A DNA stretch of 55,005 bases, filler included, from Bipalium vagum (lineage: Eukaryota), in assembly GCA_037834085.1 (NCBI GenBank). It is 3 parts of 3 records of this genome, joined end to end, with 100 filler letters (N's around TTAATTAATTAA, not from the genome) between each part and the next. Parts side by side here need not be neighbours in the genome. Positions count along the whole stretch, not along the records: positions 19,265 to 39,143 come from JBBMKC010265870.1; 2 more parts are not named here. The stretch is one strand, 5' to 3'. The notes below the pieces were generated by a model. That model saw only the letters and a program-made list of their open reading frames with translations, was not told where the DNA came from and searched no databases. Position numbers and translations under genes: made by a program. Below are positions 10,901 through 39,143 of this stretch, piece after piece (position 1 is the first letter of the stretch; each line of letters begins with the position of its first letter).

Positions 10901-13900
10901 AAAATTTTGGCTCGTCTTTATCATACTTTTGGCACAACTTTGGATTGGCATCACTTTATCGAAACAATTTCAGAATGTCAGACCTTAATAGAATTAATAA
11001 AAAGAGTGCTCAAATTAATTGTACATTATTTGAATTGGGAAGTGAGTATAAGTTCAGAAAAACTTCTTAAAAAGAAATTTATACCAAAGAAAGATGAAGA
11101 ATTGGAAAAACATACAAGTATTGGAATTTTTTAAAAAGAAATTTATATTTTCCCTCTCCCACTGATTCAGTTCAAGGATGGATTCCAGATTGTTTGAGTT
11201 TGTTGTCTTTATCTAGAAGAGGATTGGAAATTGATTCCTTAGTGTCATCATTAGAATTATTGGGTTACGTAAAGGATTATCAAGTTTTTGAATCAGATAT
11301 TTGGAGCCTTTTTCATTTCACCAGAGATTACATGTTTCGATATCATGACAATAAATTGGTTTTCAGCAATTCCATATGTCGGGAAATAGTGCAACACATA
11401 TTTCTTGGTAGATAAGTTTTCCTACTTATTTTTTTATTCTCTTGTCATTTTTCTCAAACTTTATTAGTTTTTTTTAAGCAATCGCAACCTGTAGCTCAGT
11501 AGAACCGAGAACTCGAGAATGTAACGATTTTGTATACGTTGACAGAAGGTGCAAATTACATATTCTTCTGGCATACATTTCTTGGAACAATCGTCATAGA
11601 AATGAAAGCAGTGCTTTAGAATGCATTCATCATCTGGATAAAGCTTCGGATACTGAATCGATAGCAAAGATTATGTTCATTCCATGGTTGATGTTTTTTA
11701 TCTTTAATATTATCTAATTTCCTGGTTTAATATTGAGCTATCAATTTTATTGGTAAAATAATAATGATTATAATCATTATTATTTTTTAAATGACTATTT
11801 ATTATTAAGAGCAATTTTAATTTTTAAAAAATAATATTTTTAATTTTTTGATAAAATTACAAAGATAAAATTGAAGTCTTGACTAAATGTGTAACCATTA
11901 TACAAACTGAACAAACTAATTTTAATGTTGCATGGAGTTGTATTCTTCATCGATTTAAAAGTTATTTTACGAAACCCATAAATTTGATAAGTTTTTTATA
12001 TTTAATCACGTTACTCTCCCTTTCCTATCCTTTTCAATATATAACTTATTTATGTCTTTAAGTGTTCTATTACAACTGTTTAATATGAATGTCGAAAGCC
12101 TAAATCATTGGCAAGGTCAAGTTGAAAGTTCCTTTCAATTCCAATATTACTGGCGTCTGATAAATCTTGAAGACTCAGATATCACTACACAAATCAAATT
12201 GTTCTTGATGCGGTTTTACGACCTGAATTTAAATATAGAAACTGATGAAACTAAACGAAATGAGGCCACAATTATTCAATCAAGTAATCAACAAAAAGTA
12301 ATTGATTTCTTCGTGTTAGCCTTATTGTCATAGACAATTTTAATCGGATTTTTTGACTGAATGAAAATTTTTCTTTTCTAATCTGAAATAAAAATTCCAA
12401 TGCCATTTTCAATTAATTTTTTAATTGATAATTTTTTTATTTTAACAAAAATGATCTAAAACTTTTTTGATTATTTTCTGGTTTCTTTTTGTTAGTTTCA
12501 AATAATAGATTTTTAGGTTTTGATTGTTTCAATCTATATTGTAATAATTTAAAATAAATGAATTCATATTATTAATTTTATCATTTAATTAATAGTTTAA
12601 TAATCAAAAACTATTGGAACTATCAAAAATCATTATTTTTTTTATTATTAATGATTGAATCTGACAAGATTTATAGAATTTTTATTCTCGTTTTATCAAA
12701 CATGTTTGAAAATTTATCAAATAAATTTTTCGATGTTTTGTAAAGTATTTCATAACTTCCAAATTCCAAAATTTAGCTCTTATTATTTTTAATCTTTTCA
12801 GATTATCTATTATCATAAAACTTATAAAATTGAAATTTAGAAATCGCTGACATCTGATTTTTCCCAAAGTTTAGCTATCCAAGTAAATCTGGTTGATGAG
12901 AAAAGTAAAGTTTAAAGTTCAATGTTTTAAAAGTTTATTGTAATTTAAAGAATTTGTTTTTGGATTGTCCGATAACCAGAATTGTAGATTGCTTTTATTA
13001 CTGGCTCAAATATGTGTTTTGATGGATCGGAAAATAATTTCCAGAAAAATATATAGTCATATTGTACAAGTATGTCAACTCTAATAAATTGGAAAGAAAA
13101 TATTATTGAAAAATATTATTGAAAGATTTGTCGTGATAACGTTTTCATTTGCAATGTTCTTTGGTTGGATATCAAACTTGATTCATCTTATCACCGTGTA
13201 GAAACAAACAACGATTATATTGCCACAGTTTTAAAGAAATTCAATAGAATGACAAAAGATCTGTTAGATAACAATTTGATTGACGATCCCAATTTGTTAG
13301 ATCAAATTAAATATTTACGATGTAAGCTATTAACTGTCATATTGATATTCTCACAGTTCTTTTAATGATTCCTTTTTATTTTTAGTTTTTATAACAAATA
13401 TTTACCAAATGTCTTTAAAAATTAATTTTTATATCTTTTCATTTATTAATTTTTATTTTTCATTGATTTTATGTCATTGTAATTACCAATTAGAAAAATG
13501 TACACTAGAAATTTTTTTAATAATTATCAGAAATAATTAAGAGGTTTGCTTAATATGACTACCTCCTAATTGAATCATTTTATATATGTTTTAATCTAGT
13601 GAACAGCAATTTTTTTATTTTATTTAAAAAGCGTTTACTTGAAAGAAAATATATCTGTGTTCATTTTAAATAATTAAATTAATTAATTAACAGAATTAAT
13701 TAATTTTAACTTTTAGAATTGATATTATATATATATTAATCCAGGAGGAAGATAAATTATTAAAATGGTAAACAAAAGAAACGTGTTCATTGGCCTTTTC
13801 CTACTTATAAAATTAAAATCAATAATTTTTTGGAAATGTTAAATTATAAAAATTTGAATGGATAATTGCAAAATATATAAATAAACCAATTTCAATTTTC

Positions 13901-19264: not shown

Positions 19265-19340
19265 TTATTAATTTTATTATTAATTTTATTATTAATTTTA
19301 TTATTAATTTTATTATTAATTTTATTATTAATTTTATTAT
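19265..19340. repeat. (TTATTAATT)n 9-bp tandem repeat at contig edge
   Basis: About 8 copies directly after the gap. Confidence 0.9.
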
Positions 19341-21479
19341 TTTTTATATTATTATTATGGCTTTTTATTTAATTTATTATTTATTTAATGAATTTTACTC
19401 ATAGGAATTTTAACACTATTATTAAATTATTATTATTTTAAAATTATTATACAAAATTAATTATTTAATTCAATATTAGGTAACAAATTTACCAAAGGCC
19501 TTCATTAATCCCTACATATTTAACTAATCAAATGTTTGAAATAATGATTTTAATTTTGAAGAAAATCTATTTTTATAAAAAAAAACGTTTGTTGAAAAAC
19601 ATAACAGATATTCTGATATTTATTAAACCGAACTCTTTAAAAGATTTCATTATATGTTTAGTATAATGTTACCAGACATTGAGCAGCAATCAAATTATAT
19701 TGTAATATTTTTCTAAGTACATTTTTCTCACTTTGATGTTCAGTTGATATTTTAACTTTTGTACTGCTTATTAAGAGGTAAGTTCTCTCTCATTATTAGG
19801 TTCTCTCTTCTTATTAACGTTTTATGATTATTATATTACTCCCCATATTTTTCCATTTATTTCAAAAATATTTAGAAGATTATATGAATATGTCATTAAG
19901 AATATTATACAGTCGTAGCTCCTTCAATGAAATCCAGAGGGTTTTATCAGCCTTGTAGACCCTTCTTCAGTTTGATCAATTCTATTCTTTTGGTGGTCTA
20001 TTGATATTCATGATACCATTGTAATAAATTGAATTATGACATATTTTATAAATCGGGAATAAATAAAAATTTTTTTTTAATTTGGGTACAACTTTTAACC
20101 ATTCTAAGGTACCAAAATATAATGAAGAAAATATTAGAGAAAAAGTACAATACAAAAAGGACATCTATTCTTTAAAAAGTCATTAATGAGATGATTATTT
20201 ATAATTTCCATCACCAGGCAAAAATTAAAATCGCAAAAGAATAGTAAATTAAATAGTAAATTCTTACTTTATTTCCATATTATTTTGCTTTACTTTTGTA
20301 CCATTTCCGACTCAGTTCCTCTTTGAGTATCATTGGAGTTATAATGACCTGTGCTGTCCTATTTGTACAATTTTATTATCTTACACATTTCTGCATATCT
20401 GAAAAAATCTCTCCTTTTCGGATCTTGAATCTTTTATCAAATTTGAATATTGGTCCTTATATTTAAAAACCCATTGATTTTTGCTAGAGGATGGAGATTA
20501 CACTAAAATTATTCCCCTGTTTTTTCAAAATTATTTTGTACGGTTCATTCATATCTGCTTTTAATCATTTCGAAGGCATTGTTTTTCCACTTTAATACAT
20601 TACGGCTATGTACAGATAAATATGATTCTGATCTGCGAACATTTACGATCAACTCCTATCAATGAATAAAAAGACGTTTAGTTATTCTTAATACACTTTT
20701 TACGAAATGTTTTTCAATTAAAACAATAAATTAATTTTTTTAATAAATTAATTCGTGGATCTTTCATATTGTTTGTGGTCAAGCAGAAATAATACATGTA
20801 CTTAAATCTTTTAGGTTAATCTTTATTTATATTTTCCATATGATGAGACAGTGAGCAGGTTTTTTTCATTTTTAAAAAGGCCCTTTCAAAAGTAAAATCA
20901 AACTTTTCTCTATGCGGTAATAATTAATATAACATAGTTAGAGAATAACTTTTTAAGTCCTCAATTTTTTTTACTTCTTTACTTCAATTTCTGTAAAGAA
21001 TAACTTTCCCATTCACACATTGATTTTCTTTGTTAGACCCCTCACATTGAATGAACATGTTTAACTCATCATTTGATGTTATTTTTAAGGAATAGCAGTC
21101 AGCATCAATTCTAAATTCATTCTCCTTTTATAACATTCACATCTTCTTTCAATATTAATATAGAGATCTGAATTAAGACCGATATTGTGCAGGTGCTGAT
21201 TTCTGAATTGTACCTTGTACCAAACTGGTGATTCTTAAGTTTATAGAGATGGATTAATAATAAGTGGGTTGTTAATAATGATTTATAATAATTCCATAAT
21301 GTAAATAATGTTCTAAGTTTTGAAGTTTTATCACCACTGAGTTTAAAGGTGTACTAAAACGGTCGGTTATTTGTATTAATAAGTAAATTAAGTTGAAAAA
21401 ATCAGATTGTCATTTTGCTTCAAATTTATTTTAGTTGCAAAACCTTTTGTTGATACGGTCATCCAAATCCCTCTAAAAT

Positions 21480-22250
21480 TTTCTATTTAATATGTTATCA
21501 TTTTGTGACATTGGTCACTGTTTTGATTGTTAAAAAATTCTTCGTTTTCGCAGTTACAGATATTACTTTTAGGCCTTCGTCATTTATTGTCTGTAATATT
21601 TTACTTTTAAAGATCTTGAATCCCTCTGAATAAGGAATTTTAATAATTTTTTTATATTCATTATTTTCTTTTTCTTTCTTCACATTACATTCTTGATTGT
21701 TCATAAATTTATTCACGGTATCTTCAATCATCGTTTCAATTTTCCAATGTGGATAAGCATTATTTTGTAATCTTCTTTTCAGTTCATTCAATTCTATATC
21801 AATCTGCTTATAATCTGATGTTAAAGACCAAACTCGGTGTATTCATCCTTTCATTAGGTCATTTTTATACTTTTCCTCACAGTAGCTGTTATTTGATGCG
21901 TGTAAGACGGTATCTTTTCTTTTTCTATATAATGATTTTTTCAATGTATTACTTGGTTTTTCTTTTATTACTAATGGTAATTTGTTTTCACTTTCCTTTT
22001 TAATATTGAACTTTATATTAGGATGGAGATTATTTATGTATTCTACGAATGGTTCAATTTCTTTTTCCTTTTTGAATGCATCATCAGCATACCGTTTATA
22101 CACTAGTGGTCTATTCTTATTAGAATCGTTTATTTTCTTTTCCAAGCTATCCATAAATAAAAAAGCCAATGTTGGTTCTAAAGGTGATCCCATAGCAACT
22201 CCATCTCTTTGCGTGTACTATTCGCTAATGAACAAAAAAGAAATTTATAT
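21480..22250 (-). mobile_element. Penelope-like retroelement reverse transcriptase fragment
   Basis: YTQRDGVAMGSPL.PTLA.LFM..LE, YKRYADD, INNLHPNIKF..KKE, YRK and LQNNAYP are the RT core and thumb motifs of PLEs. Frameshifted; no GIY-YIG domain recognised. Confidence 0.85.
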
Positions 22251-22879
22251 ATTGATAAAATATATTTATTTCTGAGTTCCAAAACCGGTTACTTTATACA
22301 AACCTTTTGTAATGGTTTACAATGCTTACAAGAGATTTATCTGGAAATGGGATTTCCTAAGGGGACCCGTGAGCTTTCAGCCTCACATGGCCTTACTACT
22401 TTAGATTTGTAAAGTATGATTATATTAAAAATTCCTTATGTGCATCAGATTTTTCTCTATAAGACAAAATAATTGATAGATTTATTAAATTGTCATCTGA
22501 CTTCTCTAAAAAATTATTTTTCGGTATATGTTAGAGTCATGCTTTGTAATAGAGCTAAATGTTATCATTCTAAAAAAATATTTATTTATTTTCTTTTAGA
22601 AAAAAATAAATTATATCAAAGCTTTCTGTCTTTTATTCGTAGATAAAGTTTCAGAAACAAGTAATAACTTTAATAACAAAATTTTTTTTGAAAATTAAAT
22701 TTTTTCAAGTAGACTTGAGATAAGGGAATTTGCTTCCATCGTTTTCTTATAGATTAATTATTATTATAAATATTGTGTATTTGTCATTGAGAATAAAACT
22801 AAAAGCCAATATTGAAATATATCTATAAAATATCAATATTTAGTATTTGTTTTAACTGATTAAATAGTTAATTTGTTTT

Positions 22880-23620
22880 AGCAAAAATGCAAAATCATAG
22901 ACCAAGAATTGCGAGAGTCATTATTATTTTGCTACAATTTTAAGAATTCAACAGTCCGAACCAAAATGCCGAGAATGGTATCGACAATTTAAGACAGATG
23001 ACTTTAGCATTGAAGACAAAGAACATTTAGGACAACCAAAGAAATTCCAAGATAATGATTTAAGAGAAATTATCAAAGAAGACCCATGCCAAATGCTTGA
23101 AGAAATAGCGAAAACATCGAATATTGACAGGTCAACTGCTGGTAAACGGATGCATGCATTGAGAATAGTTCAAAAGTATTGAAAATGAAAACCATATGGT
23201 TTAACCGAAAGGCAACAAGAAAATCGCAAAACTGTTTTCGAAATATTACTTACAACGCGCTCATTTTTGCATCGAATTATAACTGATGACGAAATATGGG
23301 TGTGGTATAAAAATCTCAAACGCAGAAAATCATGGACAATCCCTAAAGAATTATCAACATCGACAGTACAAAGATGGGAGAACAGAAGTAAAGTAATGCT
23401 ATGTATTTGGTGGGACCAAACAGGAGTACTGTATCATGAACTTCTCAAACCATATGAAACTGTAACTAGGGATTGATATCAGCAGTAATTACTCAATTTA
23501 AGATGAGCAATAAGTACCAAGAGACTACAATACCGCCTAAGACATGATCAGATCATTTTGCAACACAATAATTTGTAAAATCAGTTAAGGAAAAATTGAA
23601 AAGACTTGGCTGGGAGATAT
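22880..23620 (+). mobile_element. Mariner transposase remnant
   Basis: WYRQFK.DDFSIEDKEH.GQPKKF, RIITDDEIWV, KVMLCIWWDQTGVLYHELLKPYETVT, RLGWE; truncated before YSPD. Confidence 0.9.
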
Positions 23621-26154
23621 AATAATTAATTTCTATGATTTTCAATATATTATCCTCAAGAAATCCTATTTATCCATTCTTGCTATGCAATATCAATACT
23701 TGCAAAAAAATTTTATTTTCTTATGACCTATTATCATTTCTCTTACCTTTTCATGTAATCATTTTATTTTTATATTTCTTTAAAAAACTCTTCGATAAAA
23801 CAATATTAATATTCTTTATTTTTGTTTTAACAAAGTTAAATATAAAAATAAACATATTATATAATCGAATCTATATAATATTAATAAAAATAAATTATCT
23901 TATAATTATATATTATTATATAAGATTGGCTTAATTAATATCAATGTTTGTTAATTTAGTTTTTTTTTAATTATTCCTTTAAAACGACCATTCTTTTAAA
24001 TTTATTGATTATTTAACACTCAGATAAAATCTGATCTCAGTCTTTTATATAGATTATATTGACTTCATTTTTATAACTTATTAATTATTATCATTATACT
24101 TTTAAACTTTTATACTTTTTATCATTATAAATTTTTTTTAATTTATCGCTGCCAGAAGGACAACTTTTTTTTCAAAAGAACGCACAATAATGATTGAAAT
24201 TATTATAATTACTATTTAATTTCATTATTGTTTTTTTAAAATTGTGTATTTATATTAAATTAATTAGGCGTTGACGATTTGTACATTAGTTAATTTTTTT
24301 TTCAATTAAAGTCTTTCTAATTTATAGAAATGATAAAATGTTTAGAAATATTTATTTCCGCCTAAATTAGTGACTTAAAATAATTATTATTGCAATGACA
24401 AAGAGTAAAAGTATTCAAGAAATTCGCTTGTTTCTTTGTGTCGATGAATATCATTAGAAACGATTTAATTAAATGATTGAGGAAACATAGACTATAAATA
24501 AGCTAATTTACTTTGTCTAAAATATTATTAATTTTCTATAAGAACAATAAAAGTTTGTGTTTTCGCATTTAAACAAGTGTTTATTTTAGTTTAATGTTTA
24601 TATGTAAACAGAGAATTGATTAAATACGGAAAATTTCATAATTAGAAAATATTTTTTATTTATATTTCTTTATAAATTTATAATTATTTATATATTTGTA
24701 CTTTAATTCATATTTAATTCAATAATTTAGCGAAAAAATAATAATAATAATTCGAGAGACAATTAAAATTTCTTTTATCAAATGTTATTTTAATTCTATA
24801 ATTTAACTAAAATAAAAACAAATTAAAACAAATCGTGATTTTTAATATCAAAGTATTTTATAATTAATCATAATTCTCTGTAACTAGACAAGAATAAATA
24901 TCAAATCAATGAATATTCTTCAAATAAAGGTGTTATATGTGAAGAATCTAATTGTTCTACTTTTCTTTAATTAAATAATAATTAAATCATTCTTTATTAT
25001 TCTGTTTACTGACTAATTAAGTAGATAGCAAAATCTTATTAAATAAAAGTATCTATTTTAGCTTGTTCAGTGTTCGAAATTAATATTTGTGTAATTAAAA
25101 AAATAAGATAAATATATTATTGAATTGTGCTAAATGTATACAATGTTAATCAATTGCAATATTTCCCTATTTTTGACAGGTTTTCTTTATAGAATTTGGA
25201 ACTCGTTTATTATATATTTTTGTTTAAACTAATAATAAAGTAGAACCTTAATTTACTATTTCAGCCTAATTCTTACTTCTGGATAAAAAATCAAAAACTA
25301 CATTTATTTATACTTCCTCTTAACTACTTCTCATTTCTCTAATTATGACGGTACTTGACTATATTACTAATACCTGAGTATACACTTTTGCAATAAATTC
25401 CGAAGAAATGTGATCCAGAAGTAGTTTATCTAACAAAACGTTCTTCAATTTATCGAAATACATTTTATCTAAGACTTTTTACATTTATGTGTACAAATAG
25501 GTTCTAGTTTTTACAAAGGCAACTTTAAAAATTCGATTTCCATATTTTGTGCATTCTTTGAATCAAATATTGTATACCAAGTAATAAGACAAATCATTAT
25601 CTACAGTCTTTAGGTATACCATGTCTTTTTATCATGTATTTTGCTTGTAGCCAACATTGAGAATTAATAGATTATTATAATTAGGAAATTAGGAAAAGTC
25701 TGTGGAAGAAAATAGGCGTTTTAGTTATTTATTGTAGAAGTTATATTGATTTAAAATTTTTAAAAGGTATCATTTAACACCTTTAGGCAGTTAAGTATTA
25801 ATTAATTTGTTGCTTTTTACGTAATGTATCAATCAAAGTTATCAACATAGAAATTATCTACTGCAAACTGGCTAATGTCATTCAGCATTGCAAGAACATT
25901 TTTGAAAGTGAGATTCTTAGTGCTAATATTTGGCATCAAAAACAATATTTCTCCAAAAACATAATTGCTTCGACAATCTCTGGTAGGTTTAGTTCCTTAT
26001 ATTTTTTGTGCAACTTTTTAATTTCAGATTAAAATGATCACAACTTTAAGATATTTAAACAAAATGTGTTATTTCACGTTTGAGTCATTGCATAATTATC
26101 TTTTATGGTCAATTTAGTCAAATGAAATTTTATTAATCAAAATATTCATTGTCA

Positions 26155-26196
26155 ATGGTCACAATGAGCAGGTTGTCACATTGACAGGTTTTACTG
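26155..26196. mobile_element. Isolated pogo/Tigger-like terminal repeat
   Basis: Reverse complement reads TA-CAGTAAAACCTGTCAATGTGACAACCTG; no partner end found. Confidence 0.4.
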
Positions 26197-26475
26197 TATA
26201 AGAAACTAACATTTGCAGGAAGTCTTTTGCATTATTATATTTCCAAGAAAAACTGTCAGATTATCTTTAATTATGACATAAAAATATTAGTTTTTCCAAT
26301 TTAGAAATTTTAAGAACAAAGATAAATTTGAAGGTAACGAACTAGAAATGTTACTGGATTAAGAGCCATGTTAAACACAATTTTAACTCGTTGACGTATC
26401 TTTACTTCAATGTAAAGCACTTCATGTCATAATTTTTGACATGCATTTCTTCTTTAAGAGTCATCTACATTTATA

Positions 26476-27832
26476 CATGGTCTTCCTAAAGAAGCTTTAC
26501 TACTTTAAGTCGCTATTTCTCCGTACATAAAAATTAAAAAGCTAAGTAATTTTATTTATACCTTTATTTAAACACAGATATTACAAAAATTTATATTTTA
26601 AATATGATATCATTAAAATGACCGCCTCTGGCAGTCTTACAAGTTTAGGCTATTTTTACGGAATTTTGCATAACTTTTTGGCATAAGTCAATTGAGATCA
26701 TAGCGATTTGTTCCAAAATGTTGTCTAATAGTTTTTGGTTGATTAAAAAATTTATATAATTTATATAAATTTTATAATTATATATTTATATAGTAAAAGA
26801 TTAATAATAAACTTTATCTTTTAGATATCCCCATAAGAAATAGTCTGGAGCCGTCAAATCGGGAATTTTTGGGAAGCCAATCAACATCACCTAAGCGTGA
26901 GACCACGACAGATGGGAATGTTTCGTGTAATAATGCAATTGTTTTCCTATTTGTATGGGATGTGGCACCCTCATGCTGAAAGTAAATATTCTCCACATTA
27001 AAATCATTCAGATAAGGCTTAAGGAATGTTTCTATCATGTGTCGATATCTTTCTCCCGTTACCGGAACCTTTTTTACCTGCAGAATTTTCGAAAAAGTAT
27101 GGACCAATTACACCTCTTGCCCATATTCCACACCATACAGTAACTTTTGGTGAATCTAATGCTTCTTTCTTCAAAACATAGGGTTGCTTTGTTGCCCAAA
27201 TTCCACAATTTTGTTTTTTAAAAACACCTTCACTGAAGTGAAAATGACTTTCATCAGTCAATGATTTTTTTTCCAAAAATGAAGATCCGCAGTTGATCTT
27301 TCTAACAACCAATTCAGGTGACTTTGATAGTCTGATTCTTTAAGCTTCTGAACTACGGTAAGCTTATAGGCTTTCATATGCAAATCTTCATGCATTATCC
27401 GCGACAAACTGGATTTTGAGATGTTTAATTCCTGTGCTCTATGACTGATTGAGGTGCGTTTATTGTCTTCAATGCTTTCTCGTGTATTTGCAATATTTTC
27501 AGGTATGCGAGCAGATCGATGTTGTCCAGATTTTGGTCTCTCTGCTACCAAGTCAAATGCTTCAAAAGCTTTAACCAGACTGTAAATTGTTGGTTTTCAT
27601 GGACATTTGTTTTTTCCCAAATTTTGCATTTAATTTTTTAACGGTTACTGAAATTGAACTATCGCTTTGATAAAATATTCTGGCAATCTCTGCCAGTTGT
27701 TGTATATTATAACGATCCATATTTAATTTTCAAATGTTTAACTAGAATAATGTTAAATATTAATTTATTTAAACAAAAACTACTTAGCATTTAACATGTT
27801 AAAAGTAGTAAAGCTTCTTTTGGAAGACCCTG
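26476..27832 (-). mobile_element. Full-length inactive rosa-like (DD41D-type, DUF4817 N-terminus) Tc1/mariner-superfamily element
   Basis: TA-flanked ~32-bp TIRs: CATGGTCTTCCTAAAGAAGCTTTACTACTTT at left, CAGGGTCTTCCAAAAGAAGCTTTACTACTTT as reverse complement at right. ATG at 27720 (MDRYNIQQLAEIARIFYQ), then LTDESHF, KVTVWCGI..GVIGPYFF, FQHEGATSHT, PDLTAPDYFLWGYLK. Frameshifted, with an AT-rich insertion at ~26745-26805. Confidence 0.9.
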
Positions 27833-28138
27833 TATATTCTTATGTTGTTATATCGTTTCAGGTAGTCCATGAGATAAATAATTTTATATCTGTATAAGAA
27901 CTTCATTTATTGCACATGTAATCCCATGTTATTTATTTATCCCATTAATCGAGACTTGAGAAAAGATAGAAACTTTGCTTAAGACTGATGTAATAGTTAG
28001 AGTTGAAAATAATCATATTCTACATAACAATAAATAAGAATACTTAGAAATATCAAATAGCCAACCTTTAGAAATGTCAAATAAATCAATAATGTTAATT
28101 TAAAATCGAACATCCAGATTTTATACAATATTAATACC

Positions 28139-29046
28139 ATGACCAAAGTAGAGCCAGTAAGGGGTTATCCATATACTAAGCCCAGAATGCCAATTGGGGC
28201 TCAGTTTGCAAACCCAGGTCCTATATATGGAGCGCCTACATTAGTAGGAGAAAGAGGTCATGACACAAGAAGCATACATCGTAAAGCCCCGGCATATTCA
28301 TTTGGGCTGAAACCTGATATTTTAACAGAAACACGTAGTCCTGGTCCGGCAGCTTATGGACCAGATACAAAAATTACTCGTCATGGATATGATGGTGTTC
28401 CAAAGTACTCAATCGGCCAATTACTAAATCCATATAAAAAAGAAGTAACACCAGGTCCTAGTGATTATCAAATTATCAAGGCAAAAAATATTGTGTGGCC
28501 AAAAGCACCAGAACATGTTATTGGGAAATACTTAAAAAGTTCAAGTTCTCATACTACCCCTGGTTGGCTTCTTAATTTATTTTATTATTATGAAATAATG
28601 TAAATAACCAGGTCCAAACGAATATAAATTACCTCCTCCCGATCAAACAAGTAACAAACCAAGTGCACCTAAATATTCAATGGGACATTACTTGCATTAT
28701 GACAAAGCCAAAGAAGTTTGAAAAAATTTTCTATGAGAACATAAATAATTTTACTATTTGCAGGGACCTGGACCTTCTGATTATAAAGTTGGTTCTCCAG
28801 ATGTATATCTGACTGCATCACCAAAATTTTCAATGTCAACAGGAGCTCAAATGCCTGACTCTAAATTTTTAACACCCGGCCCAGCTCATTATAAATCAGA
28901 ATTGGTACTTGATATAATCCTTTTCAAATTTTATGCATCTACTTTAGGTAACTTCTCATTTACGACAAAGCCCATCCTTTACTATGGGTATTATTCATAG
29001 TCCATATAAAGGAGAATTGCTTACACAACTTCCTACAGAAGAATAA
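28139..29046 (+). CDS. ODF3: Outer dense fiber protein 3-like (SHIPPO/PGP-repeat ciliary microtubule protein), 255 aa
   Basis: Exons 28139-28562, 28612-28715, 28764-28904, 28948-29046 splice in frame (introns 49, 48, 43 nt). N-terminal KPRMPIGAQFANPGPIY, repeated (S/T)PGP..Y and AP.(Y/F)S.G motifs, C-terminal PSFTMGIIHSPY. AATAAA follows the stop. Confidence 0.93.
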
Positions 29047-30456
29047 ATAATATTTTCATATAAAGAACATTACATTTTTAAAGATCAATAAACTTTACAT
29101 TCCATACACATTTTTCATATTTTTTTTAATTATAAATATTATTTTTAAATTTTTGAAAGATAATTCAGTTGCATAAATTTCTCATAATGATTTCTCATTC
29201 CTAAGAGTTTATTAGCAACAATTATTTCTAAATATTTTTTTCTAATGCATTACACTATAGAGTAAAAATAAAAGTATATGCTTTTAAAAATAAAATAATA
29301 AAAATAAATAATAAATAATTTCTATATTTTTCAAAAACGGATTTAATAAAACTAAACTTTTAATATATTATATATATTAAGATTAAGTAGTGACTATATT
29401 TAGCTAAAATTGAAATTGTTACAACATCACATCCATTAAAAATGTTTTTAACTGTTTCTAATGTCCCATTTTATTTTTATCTTGGATTATTTTGTCTTCA
29501 AGAATTGTTCTATATTTCTTATCTTTTCCCCTATCACCTAAGCCACCTAACATTATATTATATATTCAACACAGAAATTGACTGTCTGTTATTAAGCATT
29601 ACTACAATTCTTGTGTAAACTGTTTTTATAATAGGAATCAATTTCAATAACAGAATATTATTGAGAAACAACAATTTTAACAATACTCAATTTTATTATA
29701 AAGTCATTTAAAAAATCTCTTCAATAATCTATCATTTAAACAAATTAATACTAAATGATCTTTCAATTTTCATTATGAACAATTAATTTCCGTTACTTAG
29801 ACAATAATTTGTTTCTTGAAATAGTTATGTTTTAATAATAGACTACATATTTTACTTAGCTAAACATATTTTCTCAACGACTTCATAAACCAAAGAGCTA
29901 AATCGTTATAACTTTTGAAAACTAATGTGTTATTTAATGAATTTACTAGCTATTTTGCATTTAATTTTATTTATTTATTTATTTATATTTATAATAAGTA
30001 AGTGAAAATGAGTATTATAACTTAGAATTGAAATTTAATTTTAATATTTTTACTTTAATTAACTGTACTTTATTCAGCCAGACTCCAAGTTATCTTTCAT
30101 ACAATCAATATTCTCAATTATACTTCCTGTTACATTGAACAAAATAAGTATTAATATTTATAATAACCAAAACGATATATTTGATTCTTTCTCGGATTTT
30201 TGTTGGGTTCAGCAGTGAACTTCTTGATAATAACTCACGCAATAAGACAATAAATTCCTTAACACAAAATAAAAAAAGTCAACTATCTCACTGTGATAAT
30301 ATAACCATTGACTCCAAGCTGGCTACTGAAGATAGGAATCGCAGAGCTCCTTTTCAAAGTATGTGGTCGCTTTGGGACTGCGATCCAATTCAAGATATAC
30401 CCGTGTGAGTGAGAGTTTCGTCGGTATTGTCGTGCTAGTTAACCATCGCATTAATT

Positions 30457-31550
30457 TCGTGTGTCATTAATTATGAAATGTCGAATTTACAAAATCCAAA
30501 ATTTGACACTTGATATTTTACACAATTTAACTCGAAAGTTGTTTTTTTATGCGTAAATAGGTAATTAATTTGCATAGCGCATATGTAAATATCTGACTAT
30601 ATTAAAAATTGGTATTCTTAAAACAGTTCTTCAATGAATGAATATTGATGGTTTTAGAGATTTCGTGCAAGAGATTTCTGTCTTTAAAATATGTCACATG
30701 GTCATCTGAGACGAAGGTGAATTCAACTGGCCTGAAAGCTGTAGTGAAGAAGAGTCCATCTCAAAGTACTCAAGAATTAGATTTAAAATTCAATGTCTCT
30801 ATCTTTACAATAATTGACTGTTTGAAACTAATTAACAAGGTTAAAAAGCTTGATCTATTGGTACTTCACGAATTATGTCAATATTAGAAAACAAATCGTC
30901 TTCAAGTTTGTCTTTCTTTCTTGTTACGACAGAGATGCTAACCATTTCTTCAACGTATCGTGATGTGTGATGAAAAATGGATTATATTCGCAGGCGATCA
31001 TCTCAATTGTTGGATAAAAATGAAACGCCCAGAACCTATCCAAAACCGGATGTTCACCAAAAGGAAAATCATGGTATTATCCCCTACACCTTTTCAGAAC
31101 CAGGAAAATCTATTACAGCAGAAACATACCGTACTCAATTAAAATATTTGGTGTATATGTTCGCTACTAAGCAACCGAGATTGATCAATCCAGACAAATT
31201 AATTCTCTTGCCATACAACGGTCCACCAATATGTTGCCAAAGCAACGCTGCTCCAATTGCAGGAGTTGAAACAAGAAACTCTCTGTCACCAATGACTATT
31301 ATTTCTTCTGAGCTTTGGATCATTTCTTGGTTGAAAAAATATTCAATACAGAAGCAGCTGCAAGAAAGCCTTCATTGCCATTCTTTCACCAGCCTTCTTC
31401 GCTGCTGGAAAAAAATTACCATTAAGATGACAGAATTGTGTTGATGGTTTTGGTAATTATTTTGAATAAATACATCGTTTATTTTTCTTCATATATTGTA
31501 AATCAAAATACTGGTTTAAAATTCGAAATTTCATACTTAATGACCTAATA
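30457..31550 (+). mobile_element. Decayed mariner with both TIRs
   Basis: GTCATTAATTATGAAATGTCGAATTT (~30463-30488) matches the reverse complement of ~31519-31545. Motifs KVKKLDLLVLHEL, RIVMCDEKWI, PGKSITAETY. Confidence 0.9.
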
Positions 31551-32500
31551 ATTAATTATATCTTTATTTGTTATGTTTACTATGAAAAGTGTAATTGATA
31601 AGTAATATATTAATTCCTATTTATACTTGAAAGTATTCGAAAATAAACAAACTTATTTGAAACATCTTAAAAATATATCTATATTATATTTTATAACATT
31701 TTGGTAAACATTTTGTTTTTTTCTCTGGCTTTTTCGTGATCCAATGATAATGTTCACCAGAGTTCCCTTCACCATTTCGTTCAATCGAAGTTGCCTAATC
31801 ATGACTGAGTGGGAAAGTAATTTTCTTATACATTTTAACACATATATAATGATATAATACAGTTTTGATAAATACATTTATAATTAATTACTATGATGAT
31901 GCAGAAGTTAGTGCTCAAAAAATCTTATAAAGAAATTTTACATTCCATACTAATATACATGCATACATACATAGTAACATAAAATTCTGATAGTATTTTG
32001 GTTCATAAACTTCTATATAGATTCTTTGATTTTTTCTAAGCTTTTTGGATATTTTCTTTTAACTTTATTTCCATTTATTTTTTCAGTGTTCACAATTTTG
32101 GTAATTAAGAATTTTTTTTTAATTTATATACATAAATTCTACATTATAAATATAAACATTATAATATTAATAATGCATTGAGACTTTTTGTATAATCCCA
32201 TCATTTATTTAGAACTGTTCTCTTGATTTCATATATTTTTATAAAATACTAAACTTTCTTTCCTCTTAATTTTTAAATTCTTTTCTTACACCATGTTCTT
32301 TAATTAAAATGTATTAACTAGTCATAATATATCATAATATATCATCATAACAAAATTAAAATAAATGTTTTAAATCTAAATTTTTGAGCATACTAATAGC
32401 TGATATTGATTTATTTTTTCCTATATATATTTTCTAATAAAATTTAACTTGTTTAAATAATTTATTTTTAACTAAACAATATTGGTCTATATTAAAGTTT

Positions 32501-35064
32501 ATGGAATTGCTTAAGGCCATTAACTTTGCTGCTATCAAACATTCAAGGCAAAGAAGAAAAGATTCAGAAGCTACCCCTTACATTAATCACCCTATAGGTT
32601 TATAAATAATTTTGGTACTTCTTATAAAATTTTACTTAGGTGTTGCTTATATCTTAACCAGTGAAGGTGATATTTCAGATAATAATGTTTTGATTGTTAG
32701 TTTTAATCTTTATAATTCTAATTTGAAAATATGTAGGCTGCTATACTTCATGATACTGTTGAAGATACAGATACAACTTTTCAAGAATTAGAAAACTTGT
32801 TTGGTAAAATAGTCTCAGGTAATATTTGTATTCGTATCAGATATTTACACATTCATCTGGTTCACATTGTAGTCAACAAGCATGTGACATAATTAATGAC
32901 TACATGTCATAAAGTTTTTAACGCTTTTTTACTTTGGAAAGGACTTTAAACCTTTTCTAAATTCTGTATATAAAAATTGTCATTAGAATTTTTATCTGAA
33001 TATTCTGAAACCTTTTTTAGAAAATCAGTCTATTGAAATTAAATGAAATATACCATTTATATTCTTTTATATAAGGTCTACAAAACATGGATTTGACGCA
33101 GATTTTGGTTTATCAAAATTACCGTTATAACAGTCTGAAGAAATTAATTTTTGATAAATTAATAATCAATTAAATTATGAGATTAATAAATATTTTATTA
33201 TTTAAATTTAAATAATATTCTTTATAATTATAAAATTTAATTTGCCTGTAGACTTAGTTTTTAATTATGAATATAGTGAGTACTAAATAATATATAATCA
33301 ATTTCCAATTAATTGATTTTTTTCCTTTGAGAATTTTTATCTTTATTAAGAAATTTTTTCAAACATTTAATTATCAATTATCTGGCAATAAACATTGAAT
33401 GTTTTCCTTTAATATCCTTCTAAATATTCAGCTAAAAGTCACCCTTCCAATATACCTAAATAGTAATTATAAAATCTGATAAGAAATAGATTAATTATGT
33501 TATTGATTTTTAATTTTTATTAACTTAAAATAATTCTAATTCATTAAACTTTTTTTTCATTCATGTGGGTGACATTACAAATTTGATAAAATTATATAAA
33601 AAGTAAAATATGTATTATAAATAGTTAAAGTATTTAAAATATTTAACGTGGAAATGAATATCAAGCCAATTGAGAATAGGGTTTCTTTGAAGGTAATCTT
33701 GAGAAAATAACATGAATTGCAAACATTAACAGATATTTACATTATTTTGATACCTTCTATAATTGAATCATTGATTTCCAATAAAACAATTACGAAATTC
33801 ATTTTCTGGAAATGGTATAGGAGCTGCATCTAGTCATTATCATAGCTGATTTTTGAGGGTGCTTTTCTTAGTCATAAATATGCGTAAAATAAAATCTCCG
33901 AGTATGTGATGTTATTTCCTTCTAAGAATGATTTTTTCTGATAAAAACAGTTTTCCTACAAGTTTCGGATATCACATCACCACTGACTTTGGTTTTTTCT
34001 AAATTAATTTGCTTTTTCTAAATATTTTAGTATTTCTTTGAGTTCTGATATACAGTAAAGGCGGAATTAATCGGGACACCATAATTTTTGTATCACACAT
34101 GTACAAATAACAAGCAGATAAATGTGTATTAATGTTTTAATAATGTTAGTAACACTTATGTTGACCCTTAGGATTCATTAAAGCTATGATTCGTCGAGAC
34201 ATACTATCGATCAACTTTTTACAAAAATCACCGATTTCAGAATCTACCAAACTTTGATGACAAATTATTAATTCGTTTTTTGTTGTAGGATTGAGATTAT
34301 GGGCCTTTAGAATGTGCCACATATTCTCGATAGAATTCATGTCAGGTGATGATCCAATCCAAGGTAAAAGAGTATTTTTATTAAGACGTGTCATTGTGAT
34401 TTTTTCAGTATGACAAGGTCCGATATTTTGTTGATAGAGCCCATCACTATACCAAACTTTAGCTTGATCAACTAACTGACAGTTTATTATATTTTCGAAA
34501 TACTGAGCTGCATTAATTGAAATATTGAAATACCTATTAAAGAAATAATAAAACTAATTTAATTATAGCGTCTCGATTATTTCCACATCTACTGTATAGT
34601 GTTGGAATCATCTAATTATATATTACATTATATTACATAACTACAATATTTCTTTTATATACATTTTATCCATATTTTTTAATTCGTTAAAAGTTTAGAA
34701 ATGCCTTTGGTTTTTCTATTTCTAGGCAGCTTCTTTTTTATTATTTTTCATTGAGCTTAGTGGAAAAGTTCCATTTTCAGATATTGTCAAAGAAGTGACC
34801 GATGATAAATCTTTGCCTTCAATAGAACGGAAATTGGCTCAAATTCGTGCTGCACCTCTTGCAAGCTATCAAGCGAAGTTGGTAAAGTTGGCTGATAAAA
34901 TTTACAATTTGAGAGATTTGAACAGATCCACTCCGGTGGGTTGGGATGAAGATAGGGTGACGAACTATTTCAAGTGGGCCAAAGAAGTAACAAATGGATT
35001 GCGTGGAACTAATGAGAAGCTTGAAAAGATTGTTGAAGACTTATTTAAGCAGCGAAATATATAA
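32501..35064 (+). CDS. HDDC3: MESH1-type HD-domain (p)ppGpp hydrolase / NADPH phosphatase, 172 aa
   Basis: Exons 32501-32597, 32640-32695, 32737-32818, 34781-35064 splice in frame (introns 42, 41, 1962 nt). Motifs [57 protein letters not shown]. Confidence 0.96.
34053..34594 (-). mobile_element. Internally deleted Tc1-like element inside HDDC3 intron 3
   Basis: TA-flanked imperfect TIRs CAGTAAAGGCGGAATTAATCGGGACACCATAATT and CAGTAGATGTGGAAATAATCGAGACGCTATAATT. Retains YQQNIGPCH and [15 protein letters not shown] (DD34E C-terminus). Confidence 0.88.
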
Positions 35065-35589
35065 TTTAATTTTTGGTTTTTAATTTCCCGTTAAATGCAG
35101 GGGGTTCCGATTGAACTGTAAATATCGTGTGATTTTAACCTCTTACTTTTTTTCTATTAGTTAAGGATTCTGTTATTGATAATTTGAGAAAAGAAAGTTT
35201 TGTTTATTTTCGTTTTTATTGCCTCGAGTTTGGAGAAAAGATAAGTTTAGGGTTTTGGTAATCTAATATTTTCTGTGCAATTTGATTTATTCATAAAATC
35301 AAATATAATGGTAAAAAATGTTTAGGTGCAAAGTTATAATTAATTATATTCCTTGGAGAATCAAATCTCCATCAGCTTTGTCCTCATGTGAAGTGAAGCA
35401 GAAGTATGTTACACTGATATATATAACTGGTGGTTTGAAATTTTTTTTTAATGTGGTATATAAATAATTATTGCACTAATATTATTTTCAAAAAATTAAT
35501 TGAAATAGGTTATAATGTAATTAATTGAATTATGTACACATTAGTAAAGAAAAGGTACAAGTTTGATTTTTAAGTATACCATTTAAACA

Positions 35590-36110
35590 AAAAATATTTT
35601 GAAAACAAATGCAAGCTTGTCTAAAAGAATCTGGCTCCATTCCATGTTTTTGGAAAGAATTTTTTAATATAACGGAGGATCAGTGGTTATTGAATTTATG
35701 TTCCAATCTCAAGTGTGAATTGCCAATTGGTTATCCTGGCGTAAAGCCACCAAAATGCTTCGTTCAAAGTCAAATTTCTCATGCCTGTGTTTTGGGATTC
35801 AAGTTGTGTGATTAAGGACAACTCTAATCAGGAAACTGCGCACTTCTTAGTGCTATGAAAAAGTTACAACCGAACATAAAGAGTCAAGAGCTGTGTTTTA
35901 CATGACAATGTTCCAGTTCACATAAGTCAACGACCTATGAATGTAACCGTTTGGTCTTCGTTTCAAATCTACCATACAACCCTGATTTGTCTCCAACTGC
36001 TTGATTAATCATTTGAAAAACCATTTATAAGTTCAAAAAATAGAGTTTAATGAGGATCTCTGAAGACTAGCAAAATATTTTTTTAATAAAAAAATATTTG
36101 CCTGTCTATG
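35590..36110 (+). mobile_element. Highly decayed mariner remnant between HDDC3 and METTL15
   Basis: CLHDNVPVH, LPYNPDLSP and V(L/F)WD-like motif. Confidence 0.7.
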
Positions 36111-36936
36111 AAAATAGTCTCTTCATTTATAAATGACACCTATATATAAAATTAATCTGTTTATCTATACGAGTCTTATCAATACCACAATAAAAAATAT
36201 ATTTATGTCACTCATTCATTTTCATAAGAGCAATAGCCTAAGCAAATTAAATTCATATTGAATAAATATTTGAAGTTTTTAGGAATTTGAATGGAAAAAA
36301 ACTGTAATGTAGAGCTTCAAGTTACTATTTGAAAGATTTATATTACCTTTTTCATATAATTGAGCGATTAATTAATGAAATATTTCTGATTTCGATAACA
36401 TCTTACTGTTTTCTGGCAATCTTTTTTTTAATAAAAATTTTAGAGTTAAAGATTTCTAAATAATAAGACAATTTTGTAAAAGATAAAAGATGTACGTGAT
36501 TGTATTTCAACGTCCAATTTTTTAAATAAAATTAATGTAGGTTGTACATACTTGTTATTAGAGAAGGTTCAATACCAAAAAATCATGATTGCTCAAATAT
36601 TAAGTTTAGGTAATGAGTTTGAGTACTAAAACTGTAATATTGGATTGATAGTAACCTATCATACAGAAATAATGGTATCTTTTTAGACATTAAAGATTCT
36701 GTAGTTTGAGAGCGGAATTATTTTGGATGATAACGCAAGCAACCTCGAGAAAGTGATTATGCGACATCATGTCTGCACGGTTGGTAAAATAATTGTCAAA
36801 AAATTGCTTAGTATTCATAATTTCAAAAAATTTTTATATATTATTAAGAGAAAATGATTTTTTTTTACTTTGTTCAGAATTCTGAACATTTAAAGACCAA
36901 GATACACATATATTTCAAGGAATGCAGACTTTATCT

Positions 36937-38192
36937 TCACTTGTCTTTTTTCTGTAGAACTGCTCCAATTCGCATTCTAGCACTGCGTGCTCTGGGGTTC
37001 AAATCAATTTCTTCACGAGACGGTCTAATGAAATCCCCAATCTGATGTAAAGAAAATTAACGAAAATAAAAACAGGTCAATATCTTACATACTTGAGTCC
37101 ATTCAAAATCATCAAGGTCTTCGTCACCGAGAGTATTCGATGTTATTCGAGATATCTTGTTTTCGATTCCATTATGGTCTCGTTCATGAAATGCATATTT
37201 GACTAGTCGATCTTCCAACGAATGGAAACTAATGACAACACATCGACCGGTAAAAGGTTTCAAATATCGTTTAACAATTGTCAGAGCGGACCACAACTCA
37301 TTCAGTTCATCATTGACAAAAATTCTTAAAGCCTGAAAAACTTGAGTGGCTGGATGTGCTTTCCTTTTCAAAGCATCGTGATTCATTCCCCTTTTTTTAT
37401 ATTCATTTAACTCAATAATCAAAACTTATTACCATCCAATACATTTACTGATTAAATCAGCAAGCTGACATGTCGTCAAAATACGACCGGCTGTAGTGCG
37501 ATATTCAACAATCATTTTGGCGATTTTCTTACTGTGGCGTTCTTCCCCGTATTTACTGAATATATCTGACAGCGCATTTGCATCAAGAATATTAATCACG
37601 TCACATGCACTGATTTCACTTAAATTTGAAGTTTAATTATTAAATTAATTTTTTAGATACACTTTGAATTTTGGTTCATTCGCATGTCCAGTCTTGCGTT
37701 TTTATTGAACGAAAAACCTCTGGCACCGTCATCCATTTGCATTGAGCTAGCTCCCAAATCCATAAGAATAAAATCCACTGATTTTTCTAAAATTTTGTTC
37801 GTTTTACATATTTGATCCAAATTACTGAATTTATCCTTGACTGGAAACAAATGACTGAATTTACATAATTGAAATTTTTAAATAGACCAAAATAATTTTT
37901 ACGAGTATGATTTACTAAGGACTAGAGCATTTTGATAAGCCACGTTATCTTGATCTATACATAAATGAAGTTCGCTTTTTCCACAATTCAATAAGCCTCT
38001 TGAATGACCTCCAAATCCAAATGTTAAATCAAAAACAATCTGAGCCATAAATGAAAATAATGAAAATTTTCATACTTTGTAATTTCCTGATTTATAAACA
38101 TCTATCACTTCGTTAAGTAGAACTGGTTGATGAGTAAAATTACTGTGAATCAAACATTCATTCGCAATGGTTTTATAAAAGGCTTTCCTGAT
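36937..38192 (-). CDS. METTL15: Mitochondrial 12S rRNA m4C methyltransferase (RsmH/MraW family); no ATG start found
   Basis: Exons 38192-38076, 38039-37903, 37854-37663, 37618-37433, 37390-37093, 37041-36937 splice in frame (introns 36, 48, 44, 42, 51 nt). Motifs [85 protein letters not shown]. Confidence 0.95.
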
Positions 38193-38479
38193 CTGAAGAT
38201 GATATATTTTTGTAAAAAAAGAAGAATGAGGTAATTTATATATAATTATAAATAAATTTTAAAATATTATTAAAACTAAAATTTCATTTCTAAATATTTA
38301 AATAAAGAAAATCAAAGAAATATTAAAACAATTAATTACACATTTTCGAATATTTGACTTATTCATTTAGCTTGAAATAAATCTTAATTTTTATGTTTAA
38401 TTATCATGAAATGAAAATTATGAGAAAACTCGTTATATATTGTATAAACTGTTCATTATATAAGTTTTTTCAAAAAAGT

Positions 38480-38735
38480 CATTTTCAAGAGATTGGAGGT
38501 GTTTTGTGATCTCTTTTTTAAAATGGACATTGGTTTCGTATTTAAATTCTTCTATTATACTGGATAGTTTTTCAAACATTACCATGATTCATGTATCCAT
38601 TTTATTCTCCAGTTTTGCAGTTTGGCTATGAATGCTCTAAGATTGTCTTGAAATTCAATAATAGTTAGATCTCTTCCTTGTAATGTAAGATTCAAGATAT
38701 TTTGTTATTCTAATATATCTGTGTTAAGTTTTATG
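38480..38735 (-). mobile_element. hAT (Buster/Charlie-type) transposase fragment
   Basis: TDILE*QNILNLTLQGRDLTIIEFQDNLRAFIAKLQNW resembles the Buster-family motif DIF..LN.LNL.LQG......D.I.AF..KL..W. Confidence 0.75.
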
Positions 38736-39143
38736 ACCTAAAAAGATAATTTATTATGAAAATGAAAATGATTGTTAATATTTAATCGAGTTAAGAATAT
38801 CGATAGTGGACTTTTTAAGAACTTAACATAAAATATGTGCAAATTCAGAAGGATTTAGTGCGCGTACGTTCGAAGTTAAAATGTGAGGGATAATAATAAA
38901 TTGATTACTAAAAGTGAACTTCTCAAATTTATTAACAGATACTGATTTCAAAACCTTTTAAATCGATAAACGATAAACTTTCAATTGATTAACTGAGATA
39001 ACAAGTTGCTTTTTATAAAATATATTTTTTATATAAATCTAACAACTTTATTTTTTTTAATACAAATTTACTTTTAAGTTAAAACCCGAGATAAAGAGTT
39101 AATAGAAAAGTCAGATCACCCTTCGGTATCTTACTCTCAAGGG

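Follow-up and report, generated by a model that had tools for sequence, protein, structure and literature searches.

A METTL15 gene lacking a genomic start codon: a candidate for initiation at a spliced-leader AUG in a flatworm

Where does translation begin in a conserved gene whose first coding exon is open, is preceded by a splice acceptor and offers no start codon? The question is raised by a METTL15/RsmH gene, intact and of six exons, that occupies 38192 to 36937 on the minus strand of the window, the whole 55,005-nucleotide stretch of DNA that was analysed. The coding length is 1035 nt and the introns measure 36, 48, 44, 42 and 51 nt, with GTA or GTG donors (the actual donors include GTAATA, GTATGA and GTAAAA) and AG acceptors. 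Exon borders (Table 1) were set by eye and by anchoring, and the searches were done exon by exon. Against the Pfam Methyltransf_5 profile (PF01795), exons 3, 4 and 5 scored 50-81 bits, the cut-off being 27, and exons 2 and 6 were found in the right order in the profile with scores under the 27-bit cut-off. Exons 2 to 6 cover positions 22-305 of the 309 in this profile.

The motifs HxPVL, FGxGGH, DLGxSS, FHSLEDR and NPRxRSA were all found in the gene, the last of them reading NPRARSA, and in a stop-to-stop translation HQPVLL lies in exon 1 and FGFGGHS in exon 2. When the exon was aligned with its flatworm orthologues, the H, P and V of HxPV were observed to be invariant, and the tblastn alignments of METTL15 orthologues run from 38186-38192 downstream. 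Judged by these profile and motif matches, which are those of METTL15 and of bacterial RsmH (MraW), the locus is METTL15, the mitochondrial 12S rRNA m4C methyltransferase of the RsmH family, and the gene here is intact and probably functional. It differs from the family in having no genomic start codon and in its introns of 36-51 nt. A bacterial contaminant is argued against by the five spliceosomal introns, by nearest relatives that are animal METTL15 proteins and by a position of intron 1 that is common to three flatworms.

Table 1. Coordinates of the METTL15 gene and of the features upstream of it, counted along the window (a slash marks a splice junction)
Feature	Position	Strand	Remarks
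METTL15 exon 1	38076..38192	-	First coding exon; 39 codons, IRKAFYK...HQPVLLNEV...SGNYK; donor AAA/GTATGA at 38075
METTL15 intron 1	38075-38040	-	36 nt
METTL15 exon 2	37903..38039	-	SAM-binding motif; Pfam Methyltransf_5
METTL15 exon 3	37663..37854	-	Pfam Methyltransf_5
METTL15 exon 4	37433..37618	-	Pfam Methyltransf_5
METTL15 exon 5	37093..37390	-	Pfam Methyltransf_5
METTL15 exon 6	36937..37041	-	Includes TGA stop; Pfam Methyltransf_5
CAG 3' splice acceptor, candidate trans- or cis-splice site	38193..38195	-	Phase 0 with exon 1
AG-free zone	38196..38275	-	Upstream of acceptor; such length or more at 2.7% of AG sites in the piece
Polypyrimidine tract CCTCATTCTTCTTTTTTT	38214..38231	-	Upstream of CAG acceptor
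In-frame TAA	38259..38261	-	Upstream end of METTL15 exon 1 frame
Candidate cis-spliced mini-exon, MNKSNIRKC	38340..38366	-	ATG..TGT; donor GTAATT at 38339-38334; phase 0; 147-nt intron
Second candidate ATG	38583..38585	-	Abuts donor GTAATG (38582); 390-nt intron; inside repeated element, depth ~1500 vs 23
Repeated DNA upstream of METTL15	38475..39143		Defined by unitig depth

The minus-strand frame that includes HQPVLLNEV is open from 38258 to 38073 and contains no in-frame ATG. An earlier note on this DNA had described the frame as open to a TAA near 38260 and free of ATG, and our stop-to-stop frames agree, with the TAA at 38261-38259. All ATGs upstream of 38076 were listed together with their possible donor GTs. 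Three of them, at 38161, 38157 and 38101, are not in frame and run for 3, 5 and 8 codons respectively before a stop, the first two being the nearby pair that had been reported as out of frame and closed within 3-5 codons. Further upstream, the sole usable GT for the ATG at 38287 is located at 38276 in phase 2, and its joining to 38192 gives an immediate TAA, just as had been claimed for an ATG-plus-GT at about this position.

An absent ATG could reflect the assembly rather than the genome. The sole public run containing this DNA, possibly taken from the same sample as the assembly, gives a unitig with 0 differences over 36900-38511 at a depth of 23, the single-copy level, and the absent ATG is therefore no local assembly error. 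The run is represented by genomic unitigs only, and since 91% of the words of the stretch, introns and flank included, are present in it, we take it to be DNA. With no ATG in the exon 1 frame, an initiator AUG must therefore arrive with RNA that is spliced to 38192.

The site at which such an RNA would be joined had been described as a pyrimidine-rich tract and a CTTCAG before ATC AGG AAA in phase 0, and the sequence bears this out. CTTCAG occupies 38198-38193, so that exon 1 starts at 38192; it opens with ATC AGG AAA in phase 0 and has no stop through HQPVLL. This acceptor is also the strongest-looking one in the piece of the window at 19265-39143 (19.9 kb), where it was compared with all 1801 AG dinucleotides of both strands. 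Among them, only the CAG at 38195-38193 has at once no AG over at least 82 nt, 13 or more pyrimidines in a run and a pyrimidine fraction of 0.68 or higher; a run of 13 occurs at 0.3% of the AG sites and a fraction of 0.68 at 6% of them. The internal METTL15 introns have far weaker acceptors, whose pyrimidine runs measure 4-8. The acceptor at 38193 has the look of a genuine 3' splice site that is of another kind than the internal ones, as would be expected of a long first intron or an outron. The next AG upstream (38277-38276) runs directly into a TAA and there is no other between 38276 and 38195, which makes 38193 the sole acceptor able to open the frame.

It is very improbable that the exon model is wrong in this region, with the first exon starting from another acceptor (ttcacag/T near 38141) or extending upstream of 38193. 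The TTCACAG within the exon is acceptor-like, but a leader AUG joined at this inner site would read AUG UAA at once. As for an extension, MAFFT can align the presequences of orthologues to the frame upstream of the acceptor; however, the peptide encoded there is translated pyrimidine tract, and this frame meets the TAA at 38261 before any ATG or AG is reached.

The METTL15 loci of Taenia crassiceps (L002), Trichobilharzia szidati (L003) and Opisthorchis viverrini (L007) were compared with the one here, a check on the 5' ends of orthologues that had been proposed in the earlier note. In all three a single exon encodes the Met, the presequence and HxPV, and intron 1 is placed as it is here, just ahead of (x)(F/L)(V/L)D(L/M)TFG. 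On this comparison, exon 1 here is the orthologue of the start-codon exon of other flatworms, and a coding mini-exon upstream of it would therefore be a lineage-specific novelty. Each of the three has its own ATG in the first exon whereas none is present here. The conserved His is residue 23 in two cestodes and residue 29-35 in trematodes.

In Trichobilharzia the ATG abuts a good acceptor, the sequence being ctcttttaattag/ATG ATT AGA ATA, where the locus here reads catcttcag/ATC AGG AAA. Exon 1 may thus begin like the Trichobilharzia exon minus its ATG, with Ile-Arg in both, or the ATC may be a mutated ATG. The likeness to the MIR of Trichobilharzia is slight at three residues only, and the presequence alignment is ambiguous and does not fix the ancestral start. 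In Taenia the nearest AG is located 14 nt upstream of the ATG, and an acceptor-like ttttggcag is present 24 nt upstream, in frame and stop-free. Opisthorchis has an acceptor-like AG 7 nt upstream of its ATG and out of frame. These architectures fit a history in which a leader was joined closely upstream of the start, its AUG fell in frame of itself and the genomic ATG became dispensable, without proving it.

A further reading is that the start codon was simply lost, for example by a change of an ancestral ag/ATG to ag/ATC. The gene would then be a young pseudogene or null allele, or would be translated by weak near-cognate initiation on the unspliced transcript, for which the ATC at 38192 could serve, or an ATA or ATT of the frame between 38258 and 38193. 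The ATC at 38192 differs from ATG by a single base and stands at the place of the Trichobilharzia ATG, and no in-frame AUG is on offer. Nevertheless, the gene retains its catalytic motifs, canonical splice sites and an open frame in all six exons, so any decay would have to be very recent, and METTL15 was observed to be retained in the other flatworms examined. Near-cognate initiation is further argued against by the out-of-frame ATG upstream at 38287, and AUA, AUU and AUC are poor initiators. We consider loss of the start codon to be an unlikely explanation.

METTL15 is directly preceded on its strand by a gene for ribosomal protein S6e in Taenia crassiceps and Opisthorchis viverrini, 438 nt away in the former (L002:1148-2063 and 2501-8214) and ~2.1 kb away in the latter (L007:1-383 and 2501-11039). 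Opisthorchis and Trichobilharzia both have an MRP-L46 gene downstream of METTL15, on the opposite strand. This RPS6e/METTL15/MRP-L46 microsynteny could be the trace of an old polycistron. The piece here ends ~950 nt upstream of METTL15.

The AUG may also be carried by a short upstream exon that is cis-spliced to 38192, either from the ATG at 38366 with its donor at 38339, which is the best candidate, from the ATG at 38585 with its donor at 38582, or from an exon past the end of the piece. We regard this as a possible but somewhat doubtful source. The earlier note had set aside the nearest upstream ATG-plus-GT and saw AT-rich DNA, a hAT relic and a gap further upstream; here it needs correction, as both joins within the piece are in frame and stop-free. 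In-frame cis candidates exist, and the argument by exclusion that had been made for a leader therefore fails. The candidate donors GTAATT and GTAATG are like the gene's own GTAATA, GTATGA and GTAAAA, and the candidate at 38366 lies in single-copy DNA adjoining the gene. Its joining would give MNKSNIRKC followed by IRKAFYK..., which places the conserved His at residue 30, within the range of 29-35 seen in the trematode orthologues. A strong acceptor with a long AG-free zone would also suit a first intron that exceeds the internal ones (36-51 nt) in length.

Against these points, shuffling with dinucleotides preserved produced an ATG...GT(A/G) model in phase 0 by chance in 23% of cases when the 316-nt single-copy flank was used, and in 80% when the whole 948 nt were. 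At a chance rate of 23%, the presence of the 38366 model is therefore weak evidence for cis-splicing, and it neither refutes nor supports the proposal of a leader. The ATG at 38366 has a T at -3, a poor context, and the candidate at 38585 is located in a repeated element. Furthermore, none of the three flatworm METTL15 orthologues has an intron between the ATG and HxPV. The two modes of splicing may also be combined: on average 66% of leader acceptor sites are also cis-spliced (PMC12582326), and since flatworm acceptors are often shared in this way, both forms of METTL15 could coexist, both of them in frame.

The repeated DNA that contains the second candidate reaches to the end of the piece. 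The unitig depth was observed to be about 1200-1500 over 38475-38700, or ~50-65x the single-copy depth of 23, and 20,000-160,000 over 38700-39143, or ~1,000 to 7,000x single copy. The latter indicates an extremely abundant short repeat that is present in thousands of copies. A hAT relic had been placed upstream of the gene in the earlier note; Pfam gave nothing for it and the Atlas gave weak DDE_3 leads, and what was found there is the repeat of ~50-65x depth.

The reading we prefer, to which we give a probability of about 0.45, is that the AUG of a spliced leader joined at 38192 initiates METTL15, for which the locus is a plausible candidate. It is backed circumstantially by the affinity to flatworms, by the outstanding acceptor in phase with the frame, by the ATG that orthologous exons carry and by the ATG that abuts an acceptor in Trichobilharzia. 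The product would begin Met-Ile-Arg-Lys-Ala-Phe-Tyr-Lys... and the conserved His would be residue 22. We infer trans-splicing at this acceptor, an AUG-ending leader in this organism and initiation at the AUG of that leader. In its full form, held just as tentatively, the reading states that the genomic start codon of METTL15 has been discarded and that the AUG would be supplied every time by the trans-spliced leader, which would make synthesis of this mitoribosome-assembly enzyme and its import into mitochondria wholly dependent on trans-splicing. The ancestral acceptor is likely to have abutted the gene's own ATG, as it does in Trichobilharzia (ag/ATG ATT AGA). A leader AUG, always in frame at an ATG-abutting acceptor, would have made the genomic ATG dispensable, and the loss of that ATG would have given ag/ATC AGG; the Trichobilharzia locus would represent an intermediate with both AUGs.

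The general statement in the earlier note that flatworm leaders end in an AUG usable as initiator is in agreement with the literature (PMC12582326, PMC7346339 and PMC9851317). Each flatworm spliced leader reported so far terminates in AUG, with a GU donor next to it (PMC12582326), the ATG of the leader is conserved across all Platyhelminthes studied (PMC7346339), and trans-splicing also occurs in planarians (PMC10899757 and its preprint). In parasitic flatworms trans-splicing affects fewer than 31% of mRNAs, of which only a minority need the AUG of the leader (PMC12582326, PMC9851317). In Schistosoma mansoni, according to PMC9851317 (citing Cheng et al. 2006), the AUG of the leader stands in frame in 28% of the mRNAs that are trans-spliced, and over 40 cDNAs depend on it to be initiated correctly. 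The names METTL15, MraW and RPS6 were absent from the supplements of PMC12582326 and PMC5832876.

The locus here can be compared with these S. mansoni mRNAs (Cheng, Cohen, Ndegwa, Davis 2006), as they are described in PMC9851317, PMC12582326 and PMC5832876. An in-phase acceptor is present in both, no genomic AUG lies upstream of the conserved protein, and the leader AUG would be codon 1. The cases differ in that trans-splicing is proposed here from sequence alone and in that the organism is apparently outside cestodes and trematodes. The leader-AUG mechanism has been published since 2006, so no new principle is involved and the question is whether METTL15 here makes use of it.

An N-terminus set by the leader would have to serve in mitochondrial targeting. 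The 20 residues from the acceptor to the His were observed to contain 3 basic and 1 acidic residue, and they have a helical amphipathic moment of 0.44 vs 0.57-0.79 in flatworm orthologues, as measured on the exon part alone with simple composition measures. The N-terminal stretch of exon 1 is thereby weakly compatible with a mitochondrial presequence and is non-diagnostic of one. In the thioredoxin glutathione reductase of Echinococcus granulosus, alternative trans-splicing was reportedly found by Agorio et al. in 2003 to give mitochondrial and cytosolic variants. In that case as in this one, flatworm trans-splicing would set the N-terminus and hence the mitochondrial targeting, but the E. granulosus case is one of alternative isoforms, whereas a single leader-dependent N-terminus is proposed for METTL15 here.

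Neither an Rfam scan nor a tRNA scan detected an RNA gene near the locus, whether for a leader or of another kind, and no leader gene was found in the 19.9 kb piece. The ATG/GTAATG at 38585 was considered as a leader RNA gene and rejected, as it has no Rfam match, is located inside an ORF of the repeated element and has no Sm-site-like motif.

If the leader reading is confirmed, a conserved housekeeping gene would be untranslatable without a leader AUG in a lineage that is apparently outside cestodes and trematodes, and the way in which a genomic start codon turns dispensable would be seen from a comparative series. It would also be a warning for annotation, as a gene finder that insists on a genomic ATG will cut short or overlook such genes, and the model of the nearest relative described below (P0001) does start inside exon 3.

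The exon 5 search gave one relative, P0001, which is 66% identical on exon 5 and is known from UniParc UPI00060E618E only (224 aa). It was followed by a model from the tapeworm Spirometra and then by bacterial and animal RsmH/METTL15 proteins. A word search of the protein collections found no close kin of P0001, and the search with exon-sized fragments returned bacterial or distant pieces only; neither yielded a transcript-derived protein of this species or of a near relative. In a quick maximum-likelihood tree of 38 proteins, in which P0001 took the place of the window's own protein, P0001 was sister to cestodes plus trematodes and the flatworm clade had an SH-aLRT of 98. By this placement, the organism is apparently a flatworm outside Cestoda and Trematoda, and would be a monogenean or a free-living form.

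The P0001 model starts at the Met of MDLGFSS... and does not include coding exons 1 and 2. Such a shortened model may be what is expected if the first exon of that species is also without an ATG; equally, it may come from a fragmentary assembly. A second protein, P0002 (Spirometra erinaceieuropaei VZI52004.1), has the C-terminal half of METTL15 twice in tandem with the N-terminal half absent, a structure that is probably an artefact of assembly or annotation. Among the Logan contigs of METTL15 transcripts, L004, L005 and L006 have no recognisable leader at their 5' ends, and in the tree they group with spiders, trematodes and insects respectively. In L006 an upstream ORF (297-554) ends ~10 nt before the METTL15 ATG (566-1645) on the same strand, and this contig is possibly a bicistronic transcript.

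The remainder of the piece at 19265-39143 is AT-rich, with 20-35% G+C. A SHIPPO-repeat gene (ODF3/CIMAP1-like) with its own ATG at 28139 was found at 28139-29100 on the plus strand, its only relatives found being the UniParc protein P0269 and the Logan contig L001 (SRR33002330), at 71-75% identity. Exons of an HD-domain (p)ppGpp hydrolase-like gene of the HDDC3/MESH1 type, with an HDTVED motif, were recognised by eye at 32502-35061 on the plus strand, and searched as single exons they gave no Pfam match at E<=0.01. Between two of these exons, a transposase relic is located on the other strand at 34149-34553. In addition, mariner-type transposase pieces are present on the plus strand at 23189-23473 and 30974-31441 (Pfam Transposase_1, E=1e-13 and 1e-7 respectively), transposase-like frames with no Pfam match on the minus strand at 26817-27729, and a weak reverse-transcriptase match, below the cut-off (RVT_1, E=0.0012), on the minus strand at 21846-22217. 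The mobile elements in these last four intervals are decayed.
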